DNA of 64,000 nt from the NCBI RefSeq assembly GCF_002571385.2, contig NW_019217912.1, forward strand, positions 443,380 to 507,379, given 5' to 3'. A program made the position numbers and the translations under genes. This document shows, one piece after another, positions 43,628 through 58,600 of this stretch (position 1 is the stretch's first letter; every line of letters begins with the position of its first letter). The notes beneath the pieces were generated by a model that saw only the letters and a list, made by a program, of their open reading frames with translations, was not told the DNA's origin and did not search any database. This stretch comes from Stylophora pistillata (Eukaryota).

Positions 43628-46600
43628 ATGTTTGGCTGGTCGCCGCCAAATATTCTGGCGACTTTAGTACTATTTCATTCTCTCCTCCTTCACCTCAAAT
43701 TGTCGCCAATACAAGCCAAGCCGTACCCTCAACGAGATCTTCTGAGTACATATACAACAGGTAACCTAGGAGGCTTGAATGAAGGAGATTGGCCAGACTA
43801 TATAAACTATAAAAATGGCGACTATATAGAGAGAGATAAGAGAAGTCCAACCGAAGTCGAGGACAGATTGCCAAACAGTAGATATGAACAATCGTTAACT
43901 GTAGAGCCTCGAAAGAGGCAGGGTATTGAAACGCCTATACAGCCTTTGACTTCAGATTCTCGTTTGGATAAAGATACTTTATCACACTTAAATACTGAGG
44001 AGAATGTCCGCTCTAAAGTCGACCAGCCAGATAGTGAATCGATTGGCGTCCCAGTCGAGGAAGAAAGAAAAGTCTCTAATAATAAAGCCATCGACAGTTC
44101 CGTTGCTGACCATCGGCAAGAGTCGATGGAAAAACCTGACAGCAATAAACAAAAAACAGAGAAATTATTGAAAGGAGAGGATTCTTCAAGTAAGGACAAT
44201 GGGAACAATGTTCAAAAACAGCAAGGAGAAAGTGAGGAAATAAAAACGGAAAACAATGGCAAGAACGATAAAGCTGATTCAAATAGTGAAAGTATAAACA
44301 GTACTGAAAGCTTTGCAGAGAAAAACAGTGCAAACGTTCAGGAAAGCGAGACAACAGCGAGCGCGGTTGTTGATGAAAATGCACAAGTGCGTAGTGTTCA
44401 GCATAACGCTGACACGACTAAAAAGTTGGAAAATCTTCCTAATGACAAGAATGTTGTCAAATTTCCTGGGTCTCTATCACAGTCAGGAAATAGTGTAGCT
44501 GATGCAGTTATCGCAGGCAAGCAAGCAAGTCCACAGGAGGCTCAAACATTAACAAAGGACAGTGTCAATAAACAGGTCAGTGGTGATGAAACCAAGGGGT
44601 CCTCTGATAAATTAGAAACACAAGACACAACAATAAAATCACGTAATCAAAACACAGCAGCTTCTGGACTGGGAAGCAAGGATAATTTTTCAAGTAAAAC
44701 GCAGTCATCACCTCAAGAAAGCGAAGCAGCAATACACACTGTGCCTCAAATTCAAAATGCACCCGTTGGACCAGTTCGAGACGCCTTAGGAAACAGTGGA
44801 TCGGAAATTGTGACAACTCGTGGCGCTTCTGATCTTGATTCATATGCTGATAGAGACGGTGAACAAAAACAATCCAACGGGCCTGAAGTTGGACATTTTC
44901 AAGTAGACGATAAATCGGCTGATTTGGAAATAAACGCAAATTCTGCTGGAGTAAAAGTCAAAGCCAAACCTGCTTCTTTACAGGTGGTTTCACGCCCAGG
45001 TTCTCATTCTGCGTCAGCGGCTGCACAGGAACGATCGTTTTACCACCACTATCACTATCCACCATATCACCTCCATCACCACTGGTATCCTGGCATGAGA
45101 AGATCATATGGACATTTTCATCGTCGTAATTTTTACCATCCATATAACTCTTTCCCTGAAAGACGTGGTTTTGAAAGTTTTTACGACGAGGCACCATTTT
45201 ACCGCCGTCATCTACATTACTGGTACCCTCACCATCATCGACACCATTTTCGCGATTCTTATTTATACGAGAGGTCGCGAATGGAGCAGCCCGAGGATTT
45301 CCCCGAGCATCATAGTCGAAGACGTCACAAAAGGCGTTTCCGACACTTGAACGGTCCATATAGACGACAGTATTACAATAACATACCGATAATGAACGGC
45401 ATGGAATCTCCGCAGATGAATATGATGCCTGAAGAAGGGACAATGCCACAGCTACCGATTGGAGGGGGAATGCCATTTACCCAACGACAGAACATAATAT
45501 CTCCAATGCCTCCACCCATAAACGTTGATGGTAATCCACCACCTGGTCTCCTCGGAGGTATGAATGCACAAAATTTTATGCTGAATGGAATGAACGGACT
45601 AAACAATTTAAACGGCGCGAATCAAATTAACAATATGAACGCATTTAGGGGTATCAATGACATGAGTAATATAGGTACAGCAGGCCTCAATTCGCTTGAG
45701 CCGATGGGAGCAATGGAAAGTTTACCAGGAGGCATAAATGGTGGTATGCAAGGCATGGCACCTACCAGCGAAATCCCTGTAGGATCACTAGGTACCAGGA
45801 ATGTTAATTCACCGCCCGAGGCTCCTAGAATGGCTTTTAAGAAAACTAAAATTCTGTCAAGTAAGAAAAATAACGAAAGTGAAACAAACAATCACGATGC
45901 ACGAAAAGCACCTTTGAACAAACAGCATGATGCAGGGAAGGCGAACAAAGGGAAAGTAAACATTGAAAGTTGGGAAAAAACTTTAAAACGATATCACCGT
46001 CTGAACGTATTTACCTCAAAAAAACACGAGCGACATCAATACCGGAGAAATGCCAAATTGGACGGAAAGAATACCGATAAAAAAGATACAAAGAAACATC
46101 ACTTGTTGCACCCACACGCACAGCACCCAAAGGAAGTAAAAGGAAGTCGTAAAAATTCAATCGTCATGCACCGTCCTCCTATCATCTATCACCCACCACC
46201 AGAGATTTATCACAGACCTGATATTGTGGTTCACCGAGCACCAATAATGCTGCATCGACCACCAATAATTTACCATCAGCCTCCCGTAGTCGTTCACCGA
46301 CCAGCAATAATATATCACCAACCACCAATAGTATTCCATCAACCTCCGCCAGTTGTTCATCAGCCAATTTTACATTCGCACGATACTTGGGTTGCAAAGC
46401 CTGTGGTGTATCACACAGCATCAATGGTTTCCCATGCGAAGACATACTATGGAGTTCCATCTCATGTGTACGCTGGTGACTTCGGAGGGGGATGCCATGG
46501 GGCACACTGCTCTTACAGAAAAGGAAAAGTACCACATCAAGCCAAGAACAGCACACAGCCAGATAAATTCAAGAAAACAAAGCGTGACAGTTTGAGCGAC

Positions 46601-55600: not shown

Positions 55601-58600
55601 CAGGAACTCAGTAAAACCCACGAAAAGTCTAGGGAAGGAAAACATATCACAAGCCTTCATCATTCTATCAAGAAAGCAGGAGTGAGAAAGCCACGTTCAA
55701 TAGAATCCAATAGAATTGTAACAACAACTTACCATTCTTTAAAGAATAAACTTCACAAAAAGGGTCATCAGAATGGAAAAGGTGGTAAGAAGAATCAGGT
55801 AGTAATAAGAAGGCCACCACTTGTATATCACCCACCGCCAGAGGTGTATCATAGGCCAGATATCATTGTGCATCGCCCTGATATCGTACTCCATCAACCT
55901 TCCGTTGTCTATCATCAACCTTCCGTTGTGGTTCATCGTCCTCCTGTTATATACCGACAGCCACCAGTAGTATTTCATCAACCAGCACCAATGGTAAGAC
56001 AACCAATTTTCCATGCACATGAACACTACATGGCTCACCCTGCATTTGTTCCTTTCACGAGTCATGTCCAACATAGTGGAACTTACATAGGAGCTCCAGG
56101 CTTTTTCAATGACGGGTGGAACTATGGATACGGTCATGCTTTTGGAAAATCGCACGTGATCAAATACAAATCTAAGTCAGAAAAAACAATGAAAAGGAAC
56201 AGGAAACAGGAAACCAGATAGGAGAGAAGAAAGGGAAATATTTTACATCCTCAAGAGGCAAAAGACGAGAAAGCATCCAGAAAGAATGACATAGTGGTAA
56301 GCCGTCCCCCAATCATTTACCATCCACCACCTGAAATTTATCATAGACCAGACATCGTAGTTCACAGAGCGCCAATAGTGCTTCATCGTCCACCTATAAT
56401 CTACCATCAACCACCAGTCGTAGTGCACCGACCTGCTGTTGTGTATCATCAACCACCCATAGTATTCCATCAACCACCTCCCGCAGTTAACCAGCCTATT
56501 CTACACTCTCATGATTCATTTATTCTCCGTCCTGCAGCCAGATTCCTTCCCCAAGGCTCAACGGTAACACACAGTATGAGCTATGTAGGAATTCCAAACC
56601 ATGTAATCCATGGAGATGAGCTGGATTTTCATCACTTCCATCGGTCTCATATTGAACGTTCCTCGAAAGGTAAATTCAACTGGAAGTCATCAAAACCTCA
56701 GATAGCAAAGTCGACAATCTCGAAAACACCTACAACTAAAACTGAAAACACTGAAACGATCATCACCGACCAAACTCAGAAAAAGACTTTGCGATCTACA
56801 ATAAATCACCACCCACTCACGAAAAGACAGTTTATGGGCTCTCACCCACTATATGGACCTGTTTCTCCAATTAATGATGTAGAAGATCTATACAAGTCCA
56901 TTGAACAAAAAGAAAAGATGTCTATTATACCAGGGAACACCTCAATCCGCGAACATGAAGTTGCAAAGCGATCCCATAAACCAAGTCATCACATGACCAA
57001 GAGACAGTTAATCTTACCAGAATCTGCCGGAAGTGTGTATCACAATTCAATACCCTCAGTTTACAATCAACTTGAGACAGCTGCTCTACAGAATCAAGCT
57101 TTAATGGAAGAGCAGGGGATACCTAATCCGGACGGAATCAATATAGAACATTTGCCTGGTTTTGCCGCTAACTTAAAAGCTATTCAGGAGCTTGAAGGAG
57201 CTCCGGTCGCAGCGTCGCGTTTTTCAATACCATTGCAACAATACCTGCCCGCAGCTCCAAAGGATGACCCTCCCGATGTTCGTGTTCACGTCGAAACGGC
57301 AAAATCCTCCATACCGCTTAGAAAACGTGGAAAACGTCAGCTCGTTCCATTATATCAGCAGCAAGGTCCCGTAATTCCGAGATTTCTTTATCAAGCTCAA
57401 AACCCTGGAAGTGTTGGAGTCATACACTCTCCTGCCCCATCATCTCTTTACAACCTCTTCAATGCATACCATCCTGCTTACCACACCATACCAAATCCAC
57501 TGAGCTATTTATCTATGGTTCCGCAACTTCCACATCGTCCCCATGTAAATATAAATGTACAGTCTGCAAGGTCTGCAATACCAGTGCATGTCCTTCAAAA
57601 ACGATCTAAGAGGCAACTACTAGCCCTTACTCCACCAGTCCCAAGAGTTATGCCCGTTGGATTTGATGGAACTGGATTAATTCGTAACTATCCTACATAC
57701 TCGCCTTTCGCAGCTATTTCCCGATTTTCACTTCCACTTTTGACAAACTTCAAATATGCTGACGACTCCGTTCCCTCAGAGCCTGGATACCCAGAAGTAC
57801 TACCCTTGTTTCATCAATATCCAAAACAATTGCACAGGCTATATAACACATTATCGCAAGATGGAAGCAGTGACTCGCCACCAATTAACCCATGGGCCTC
57901 TTATCTAGCAGCCCTTTACAGTAGCTTCCTTGGTTATCCCCTTTATCACCGCCATCATAAACCTAAAGTCCGCGTTGAAGTCCAAGCATCCAAATCACAT
58001 ATACCCAAAGTCTTAAAAACAGAAAACAAGCACACTGTTCATTCCCGAGCTCCCATTACCAAAAGACAGTTACTTAATTACATACCGGAATCCTCATTCA
58101 CCGCAGGTCACTTTACCTTACCACCAGCATTAAATTATGGAATGCAAGGGATTCCTTTACAACGCTCACCACGAGTAAACATCAACGTTGAAACGACAAA
58201 AAAGAACAGAATTCCCGCGGTTAAAGAGTCAAAAGGATCCACAAAACGAGGTAATATAAAACATCGCCAAGTAAACAAAACTGGAGATAAAAGAGACGAA
58301 ATGATAGATGGAGAAAAAAATGGCGCAGATATGTTCCAAAACCGAGGCAACCCTGACTTCGCTAACAATCCAGAAAACCAGTTTGTTGCTACAAGTGAAA
58401 CAGCTGGAAGTGAAGAGGAACCTACATCCAATAATGAAGGCCAGCCTCAAAGTCAGAGTGAAAATTTCCAGCAGCAATCGGAAGAAGAAGCGGTCGGACA
58501 AAGGCAGGATCTACAGCAAAACTCTGAACAGCAACTGTTGCCATCTCAAGATCAACCTGTCATGGAACAGACGACATCGCAACCACAAGCCTTACGTGCA

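Follow-up and report, generated by a model that had tools for sequence, protein, structure and literature searches.

A giant single-copy cnidarian protein built of 18 His/Pro heptad domains, a candidate secreted structural material

Repetitive, His-rich secreted structural proteins are already known from molluscs, annelids, insects and plants. Squid beak HBPs, suckerins and the Nereis jaw protein Nvjp-1 are modular and secreted, with Pro-bounded beta blocks that alternate with Gly/Tyr/His-rich blocks, and the His residues of these squid and Nereis proteins serve pH- or metal-dependent consolidation. The (VHLPPP)8 segment of maize gamma-zein is a Val/His/Pro repeat of the secretory pathway that self-assembles, with a pH sensitivity conferred by His. 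Cnidarian protein materials, which include stinging capsules resisting about 150 bar, have few known components. Here we analysed a 64,000-nucleotide (nt) stretch of the Stylophora pistillata genome (NCBI RefSeq assembly GCF_002571385.2, contig NW_019217912.1, positions 443,380 to 507,379; hereafter the window), which holds a single intronless open reading frame (ORF) of 6,245 codons at 43628-62365 on the + strand. The encoded giant protein comprises 18 autonomous domains of ~125 amino acids (aa), is the product of a single-copy gene conserved across Cnidaria (stony corals, sea anemone and Hydra), and is probably an unstudied structural material of these animals.

The 18 units were located by motif scan and alignment within 46148-56653, matching the eighteen His/Pro domains that a model had proposed from the nucleotide letters and their translations (the first-pass annotation), and the unit consensus given there was identical to our MAFFT consensus. 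Each unit opens with [KR]K, runs through 9–10 heptads in the register [R/Q]-P-[P/D/S/A]-[I/V/L]-[V/I]-[Y/V/F/I]-H, continues with H-x-H-D-[TS]-aromatic and a His/Tyr/Gly/Trp tail, and closes with [AF][FY]-G-K-S-x-[VI]. This layout is canonical in 16 of the 18 units, unit 6 being a longer, all-HRPP variant and unit 10 being short. The strict 7-residue period with about nine repeats that had been read from the sequence was borne out quantitatively: the distance from one His to the next was exactly 7 residues in 113 of 174 cases over the 18 cores, and the His autocorrelation at lags 7, 14 and 21 stood 22 standard deviations above that of 500 shuffles. Where the first-pass annotation had every unit start after KK or RK, 17 of the 18 units open with [KR]K themselves, the exception being unit 10, which begins with QN directly after KK. 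The cores are composed of 20% Pro, 15% Val, 13% His and 11% Ile, the most conserved residues of the unit are P, H, V, I and Y, and each unit carries ~16 His residues. Net charge per unit, computed with textbook acid dissociation constants, was +22 to +27 at pH 4.5 and +5 to +8 at pH 8.2, a drop of about three- to five-fold. The units are joined by Lys/Ser/Glu-rich spacers (18% Lys).

The units are not a recent repeat at the DNA level, where Tandem Repeats Finder detected only short stretches with periods of 21, 42 and 63 nt and 62–88% match. For the 120 pairs that the 16 canonical units form, synonymous differences had a median proportion of 0.80 (saturated) and nonsynonymous ones a median of 0.19, corresponding to a dN/dS of ~0.1 or less. 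The earlier observation that the protein is conserved while its codons have diverged, and its attribution to selection, were thus both upheld, the selection being purifying and, by the identities between coral and Nematostella given below, far stronger than was visible to the first-pass annotation.

Scoring 1.84 billion representatives with a profile built from the 18 units gave 40 proteins that matched the whole unit at E below 1e-30. Full-unit matches were limited to P0001–P0042 and a few more, all of the named ones being cnidarian, while most of the weaker profile matches were translated 21-nt simple repeats. The named relatives came from Stylophora, Oculina, Acropora, Nematostella and Hydra only and span three cnidarian orders. 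They include orthologues in Nematostella vectensis (LOC116618347; 5,019–5,088 aa with 15 units), Hydra vulgaris (LOC100210570; 3,771–4,502 aa with 9–10 units), Oculina patagonica (LOC144643886) and Acropora palmata (LOC141866752), all deposited as 'uncharacterized', and additional full-length relatives of 5,400–6,300 aa were found in other assemblies. The profile search, which the first-pass annotation had suggested, returned only cnidarian proteins among its named relatives, and Pfam, PDB and the literature searched offered no convincing match. Two sequences of ~240 aa, P0050 and P0056, combine a single divergent His/Pro unit with a tail behind it that is His-rich and contains Cys (C-G-C ... 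D-C-I-C-D), and may be single-unit paralogues in another cnidarian. In the coral genome the gene is single-copy. An apparent paralogue on contig C54 ('ORF 1742 aa') was rejected as a PPLMSHL simple repeat adjoining an N run; the site that mimicked a paralogue (G000:C54:425529-425945, L012) is a 21-nt simple repeat translating to this heptapeptide, and the adjoining N run is 4.5 kb long.

Counterpart units of different species proved more alike than units that sit side by side within one protein. For unit 2, the 84-aa core shares 99% identity with Nematostella unit 2 and 92% with Hydra unit 2, and its best match inside the coral protein reached 88%. Identity between coral and Nematostella fell from 79% in the cores to 52% in the tails and 31% in the spacers; the N-terminal part had 40% and the C-terminal part 33%. 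In a maximum-likelihood tree of 40 units from coral, Nematostella and Hydra, starred cross-species clades were obtained for units 1, 2 and 7, with coral and anemone joined by Hydra in the case of unit 2. The tree separated class A (units 1, 3, 4 and 5), class N (units 2 and 7), class D (units 8–17, together with five Hydra units) and the terminal unit, which widens the at least two subtypes proposed before to at least four classes. The number of species-label changes on the tree was 10–12 for coral and anemone and 5 for Hydra, near random for the anemone. Species labels are thus not clustered and there was therefore no concerted evolution. By these cross-species clades, the array was already in place before Anthozoa and Medusozoa separated, along with its classes and some of its order.

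All of the units lie on the + strand. Class A opens the array with unit 1 (46148-46531), which is of the HRAP type and the one-to-one orthologue of Nematostella unit 1 (clade support 99/97), and includes unit 3 (47360-47734), unit 4 (47906-48280), which pairs with Nematostella unit 4 (support 93/93), and unit 5 (48509-48877), after which a 202-aa linker follows. Unit 2 (46844-47230), of class N, opens with KKKDVVVN and is the most conserved unit of all, and its class member unit 7 (50102-50521) is in one-to-one relation with Nematostella unit 6 (95% identity, support 99/93). Unit 6 (49484-49906) extends to ~15 heptads, of which nearly all read H-R-P-P-I-I-I; its tail carries C-P-G-C, and the unit is kept in the coral orthologues P0001 and P0002. 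Class D begins with unit 8 (50678-51175), which is of the HRPD/HRPS type with a long Tyr/Gly tail, and the linker between it and the divergent, long-branched unit 9 (51416-51766) contains a poly-His/Arg run (51287-51361, +). Unit 10 (51908-52177) is only 90 aa long and lacks the HxHD-aromatic tail. The class continues with units 11 (52292-52666), 12 (52820-53209), 13 (53345-53731), 14 (53879-54271) and 15 (54398-54781), unit 16 (55061-55579), which has a long Trp/Tyr/Pro tail, and unit 17 (55787-56158). Unit 18 (56279-56653) forms the terminal class, and its HP-A-A-R tail places it beside the final unit of the Nematostella protein and that of the Hydra protein.

The reading frame on the + strand is open from 43310 to 56221 and, beyond one TAG, resumes from 56294 to 62365. 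The first Met preceding the hydrophobic stretch is at 43628, and the orthologues P0001, P0002 and P0003 match the coral protein in their start and end residues and share its C-terminal motif. Because the frame continues past the TAG and the orthologues share both protein ends, we set the gene bounds at 43628-62365. A word-index search returned a 100% identical match to the 6,136-aa entry P0174 (AWC38_SpisGene9031 [Stylophora pistillata]), annotated as a 'hypothetical protein'. RNA-library contigs cover the gene colinearly with 0 splice joints, and transcription of the gene is likely, with the limits that such contigs give no expression level, that an RNA library can contain DNA and that the runs bear no tissue label.

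The in-frame TAG (56219-56221, +) lies in the linker that joins unit 17 to unit 18 and is specific to the reference assembly, and read-through stays in frame into the spacer and then unit 18. Contigs from four public runs were aligned on 53400-59300, and three of these runs cover position 56219. The window has T at this position, while all three covering runs, which come from three studies, have C (CAG, Gln), one of the CAG contigs being a 917-nt RNA-library contig that spans 55594-56510. The orthologues have Lys or Gly at this site and their frame continues. Because the other runs carry CAG, the TAG is an allele of the reference assembly or an error in it, and the gene does not stop there. 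We rejected an intron with GT at 56156 and AG at 56221, by which the TAG would be spliced out, given the CAG in other samples and the colinear RNA-library contig. The annotated P0174 falls 109 aa short of the 6,245-codon read-through, and the annotators may have spliced around the TAG in this model.

The protein begins with a signal-peptide-like N-terminus as read from the sequence (43628-43717, +; 30 aa, ending SPIQA), with the same start in the orthologues, and the stretch after it, likewise read from the sequence, ends in D-K-R (43823-43843, +). A hydrophobic N-terminus with KR within 13–45 residues was found in coral, Nematostella and Hydra, but the protein is K/R-rich throughout. Upstream of the array lie a His/Tyr/Arg-rich N-terminal segment (45035-45277, +), of which the Hydra orthologue has one too, and a low-complexity segment rich in Met, Asn, Gly and Pro (45371-45775, +). 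The C-terminal third (56654-62365, +) holds Gln/Pro-rich modules with [KR]-R-Q at their start and R-P-R-V-S-V-x-V ... K-S-x-I-P at their end, and its C-terminus is common to the orthologues. [KR]RQ occurs 16 times in this third versus ~1.4 expected, an excess compatible with dibasic processing, and motifs of the R-P-x-V-S-V type occur nine times. This region forms a second, distinct modular array, in which several of the nine R-P-R-V-S-V-x-V motifs precede a closing K-S-x-I-P, and the Hydra orthologue retains one module of this type at its extreme end. Cys is found 4 times in the 6,245 residues of the coral protein and 0 times in the 5,019 residues of the Nematostella orthologue P0003, a near-absence that is unusual among large secreted proteins.

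The fold of the units was predicted with AlphaFold2. For unit 2, an alignment of 44 sequences including fragments from other species gave a model with a predicted local distance difference test (pLDDT) of 73 and a predicted template modelling score (pTM) of 0.31, in which strands of 3–4 residues, one per heptad, were placed at residues 4-7, 12-14, 19-21, 26-28, 40-42, 47-49, 54-56 and 61-64, followed by a long hairpin at residues 70-104. The model supports a beta-rich unit with one strand per heptad. A His ladder is geometrically plausible in such a model given the fixed His register, and a pH switch is chemically plausible from the computed charge. Foldseek searches of the unit 2 model against PDB gave no match with E at or below 0.001, the best Z among 48,161 chains compared with VIA-align was 2.6, to the long beta-hairpins of pore-forming toxin stems, with no beta-solenoid, the sequence profile search of PDB found no chain related to the units, and the ESM Atlas search returned nothing usable. 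Of the fold previously envisaged, a beta-solenoid or fibril-forming unit, the beta-rich character with one short strand per heptad is therefore retained, and the beta-solenoid is not supported by the model and has no structural match.

In Pfam, no family reached its threshold on the coral protein, and searches with single units and with the N- and C-terminal parts gave sub-threshold noise only (IHABP4_N, PDH_N and Cuticle_3). The only curated family with a signal was PF05387 Chorion_3, which comprises structural proteins of insect eggshells and whose gathering cut-off is 22 bits: the coral array (46148-56218) scored 15.9 bits and a single unit 13.5 bits, while the Hydra orthologue P0004 exceeded the cut-off with 49.1 bits over three stretches. 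The match covers ~58 residues of the heptad core and runs over positions 143-207 in a profile 277 positions long, no more than a fifth of it. Both sides are secreted, Pro/Val/His/Tyr-rich sequences of structural type, but Chorion_3 is without the unit architecture, the tail and the closing motif, and the likeness is most probably one of composition and periodicity rather than of common descent.

Several other ORFs in the window look like genes for secreted low-complexity proteins. On the - strand, secreted-looking Gly/Tyr/Cys-rich and Gly/His-rich modular ORFs were found within 32948-40166 (at 32948-33607, 34111-35763 and 38178-40166), whose modules follow KR and terminate in [FYW][FY][KR]-S-x-[VI]-[PS], the closing motif of the His/Pro units. 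The Gly/His-rich piece among them resembles a spinalin-type composition. Two paralogous ORFs of ~205 aa on the + strand (1649-2287 and 4971-5585) end in Cys/His blocks (CCHDCC, CCEPCCCC and CCHCC repeats), and these tails look metal-binding or heavily disulphide-linked. An 819-aa ORF (22297-24756, +) has a Cys-rich block and, after it, ~450 aa of GGGAAGG-type Gly/Ala repeats. This ORF accounts for the peak of GC content and GC skew at 22–24 kb, and the long ORF of the complementary strand mirrors it.

Taking these results together, we read the protein as a secreted, self-assembling, pH-sensitive, cationic, beta-rich structural protein, an interpretation that we judge evenly poised between right and wrong. 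Each domain would start with [KR]K and a hydrophobic strand. Within each heptad the Pro pair would break the chain, and the three beta-branched or aromatic residues together with His would form a beta-strand of 3–4 residues, so that His is placed on one constant face throughout the heptads. The domain would end in an aromatic/His/Gly hairpin closed by G-K-S-x-[V/I], and the domains would be strung along the poorly conserved Lys/Ser/Glu-rich spacers. We infer that the domains pack as beta-sheet ribbons, within and between molecules, into an insoluble structural material, whose solubility and packing the ~16 His per domain may make dependent on pH and possibly on metal. In the acidic interior of a secretory vesicle such a protein would be soluble, with a strong positive charge, and at the pH of seawater it would be able to condense; the conserved Tyr residues are candidates for cross-linking. 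If the protein is structural, the cnidocyst (capsule, tubule or spines), by which the phylum is defined, would be its most likely site, because the family is restricted to the phylum, has a signal-peptide-like start and a putative KR-ended leader, and shares its closing motif with the neighbouring genes; we give this placement somewhat less than an even chance. A more specific idea, which we regard as a long shot, is that the repeats of the array are not interchangeable but belong to four or more domain classes in a set sequence, with both the order and the identity of each unit frozen before the Anthozoa/Medusozoa split. The protein would then act as a linear template, ruler or graded scaffold for a structure peculiar to cnidarians, such as the cnidocyst tubule or spines, through a new His-ladder beta-ribbon fold switched by pH or metal.

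Several results weigh against the structural and cnidocyst interpretation. The topology of the unit 2 model is uncertain at its pTM, and AlphaFold2 gave no fold for unit 14 when only the 18 units of the window were supplied (pLDDT 49, pTM 0.15). The protein is without the Cys-rich domains that link known capsule-wall proteins: the minicollagen-type domain CxxxCxxxCxxxCxxxCC was absent from the coral protein, P0001, P0002, P0003, P0004 and P0191, and no collagen Gly-X-Y run (five or more G-x-x triplets) was found in the coral protein or five orthologues. With no minicollagen-type domain and almost no Cys, the protein would therefore not take part in the disulphide network of the capsule wall. 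The cnidocyst location itself draws on phyletic range and analogy, and no paper in the literature that we searched ties the gene to any structure, the LOC, XP and SpisGene identifiers and five motif strings being found in none.

Among other explanations, the protein might be a polyprotein that is cut in the secretory pathway at [KR]K and/or G-K-S-x-V to release, as its active products, ~18 His/Pro proteins of ~125 aa and ~16 Gln-started peptides from the C-terminal third. All species, Hydra among them, retain [KR]K at the opening and K-S-x-[VI]-[PE] at the close of the units. This retention, the poor conservation of the spacers, the [KR]RQ excess and the closing motif that neighbouring genes share after their KR-started modules all agree with this explanation, which is also compatible with a structural role of the pieces. 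In the 17 spacers, however, KR occurs 19 times versus 13.9 expected (p ~0.09) and all dibasic pairs together 58 times versus 74 expected; dibasic pairs are thus not enriched there, which keeps the cutting of the array into units hypothetical. In addition, the opening KK is at the domain edge, where the residues right after it form the first strand of the AlphaFold2 model, and a pool of equivalent peptides would need neither the unit order nor the unit identity, both of which have persisted over hundreds of millions of years. We therefore consider processing into separate units possible but rather unlikely.

Cnidocysts contain molar poly-gamma-glutamate, and the units, instead of self-assembling into a material, could be binding modules of a polycation that binds and condenses this polyanion, the chondroitin of the cnidocyst matrix or sulphated mucus, with His titration releasing or binding the partner. 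The net charge of +5 to +27 per unit, depending on pH, the Lys content of the spacers and the additional His/Arg runs at 45035-45277 and 51287-51361 would suit such a role, but polyanion binding requires charge and not near-invariant hydrophobic triplets and Pro positions, and we regard it as improbable. The prospect that the gene encodes a precursor of histatin-like, His-rich antimicrobial or metal-scavenging peptides appears slight. Although the protein is secreted, cationic, His-rich and modular and is probably transcribed in adult colonies, with RNA-library contigs over its gene, host-defence peptides evolve fast whereas the units keep 79–99% identity from coral to anemone, histatins do not resemble the hydrophobic, beta-branched core, and the gene is single-copy with no lineage-specific expansions. 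An ORF of low complexity without function, or an annotation artefact arising from a DNA repeat of 21 nt, might be suspected from the microsatellites that make up most weak profile matches, one of them on contig C54 of the coral genome. This is already refuted by saturated synonymous sites under a protein that was kept, by orthologues in three cnidarian orders and by the cross-species clades of the unit tree, and the short, imperfect stretches found with Tandem Repeats Finder and the RNA-library contigs over the gene also speak against it.

The first-pass interpretation as a whole is thus partly supported. The sequences are already public as 'uncharacterized' or 'hypothetical' proteins and no curated domain covers the unit. 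Some of the domains are conserved at the level of core cellular proteins, yet the protein still has neither a name nor a Pfam domain nor a solved relative, and the literature searched does not mention it. The array is also a clean case of tandem domains that have stayed free of concerted evolution for several hundred million years. If the protein is a structural component, its strict heptad of Pro-Pro, beta-triplet and His would be a new design of protein material, of interest for pH- or metal-switchable biomaterials.

Compared with known cnidocyst proteins (minicollagens, NOWA, CPP-1, cnidoin and spinalin), the coral protein shares the restriction to cnidarians and Pro-rich stretches, and its signal-peptide-like start and putative KR-ended leader recall theirs. 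Spinalin is described as a Gly/His-rich spine protein (PMC2687796 and its reference to Koch 1998), and the unit tails and the neighbouring genes of the present locus are rich in Gly, His and Tyr. The resemblance to squid beak and polychaete jaw proteins that had been drawn from the sequence holds for composition and not for homology: no sequence relation to the squid and Nereis His-rich proteins was found, and the family has no named relative outside cnidarians and none in PDB. In contrast to those proteins, the coral core is made of Pro, Val, Ile and His in a strict 7-residue period with very little Gly, and its conservation is far above what is usual for materials of that type. Gamma-zein, an unrelated plant protein, has a period of 6 that is commensurate with a polyproline-II helix, whereas the coral unit has a period of 7 with two Pro and three beta-branched residues and predicted beta-strands. 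What is new here in relation to all of these systems is the family itself, its strict heptad, its size, and the degree and mode of its conservation.

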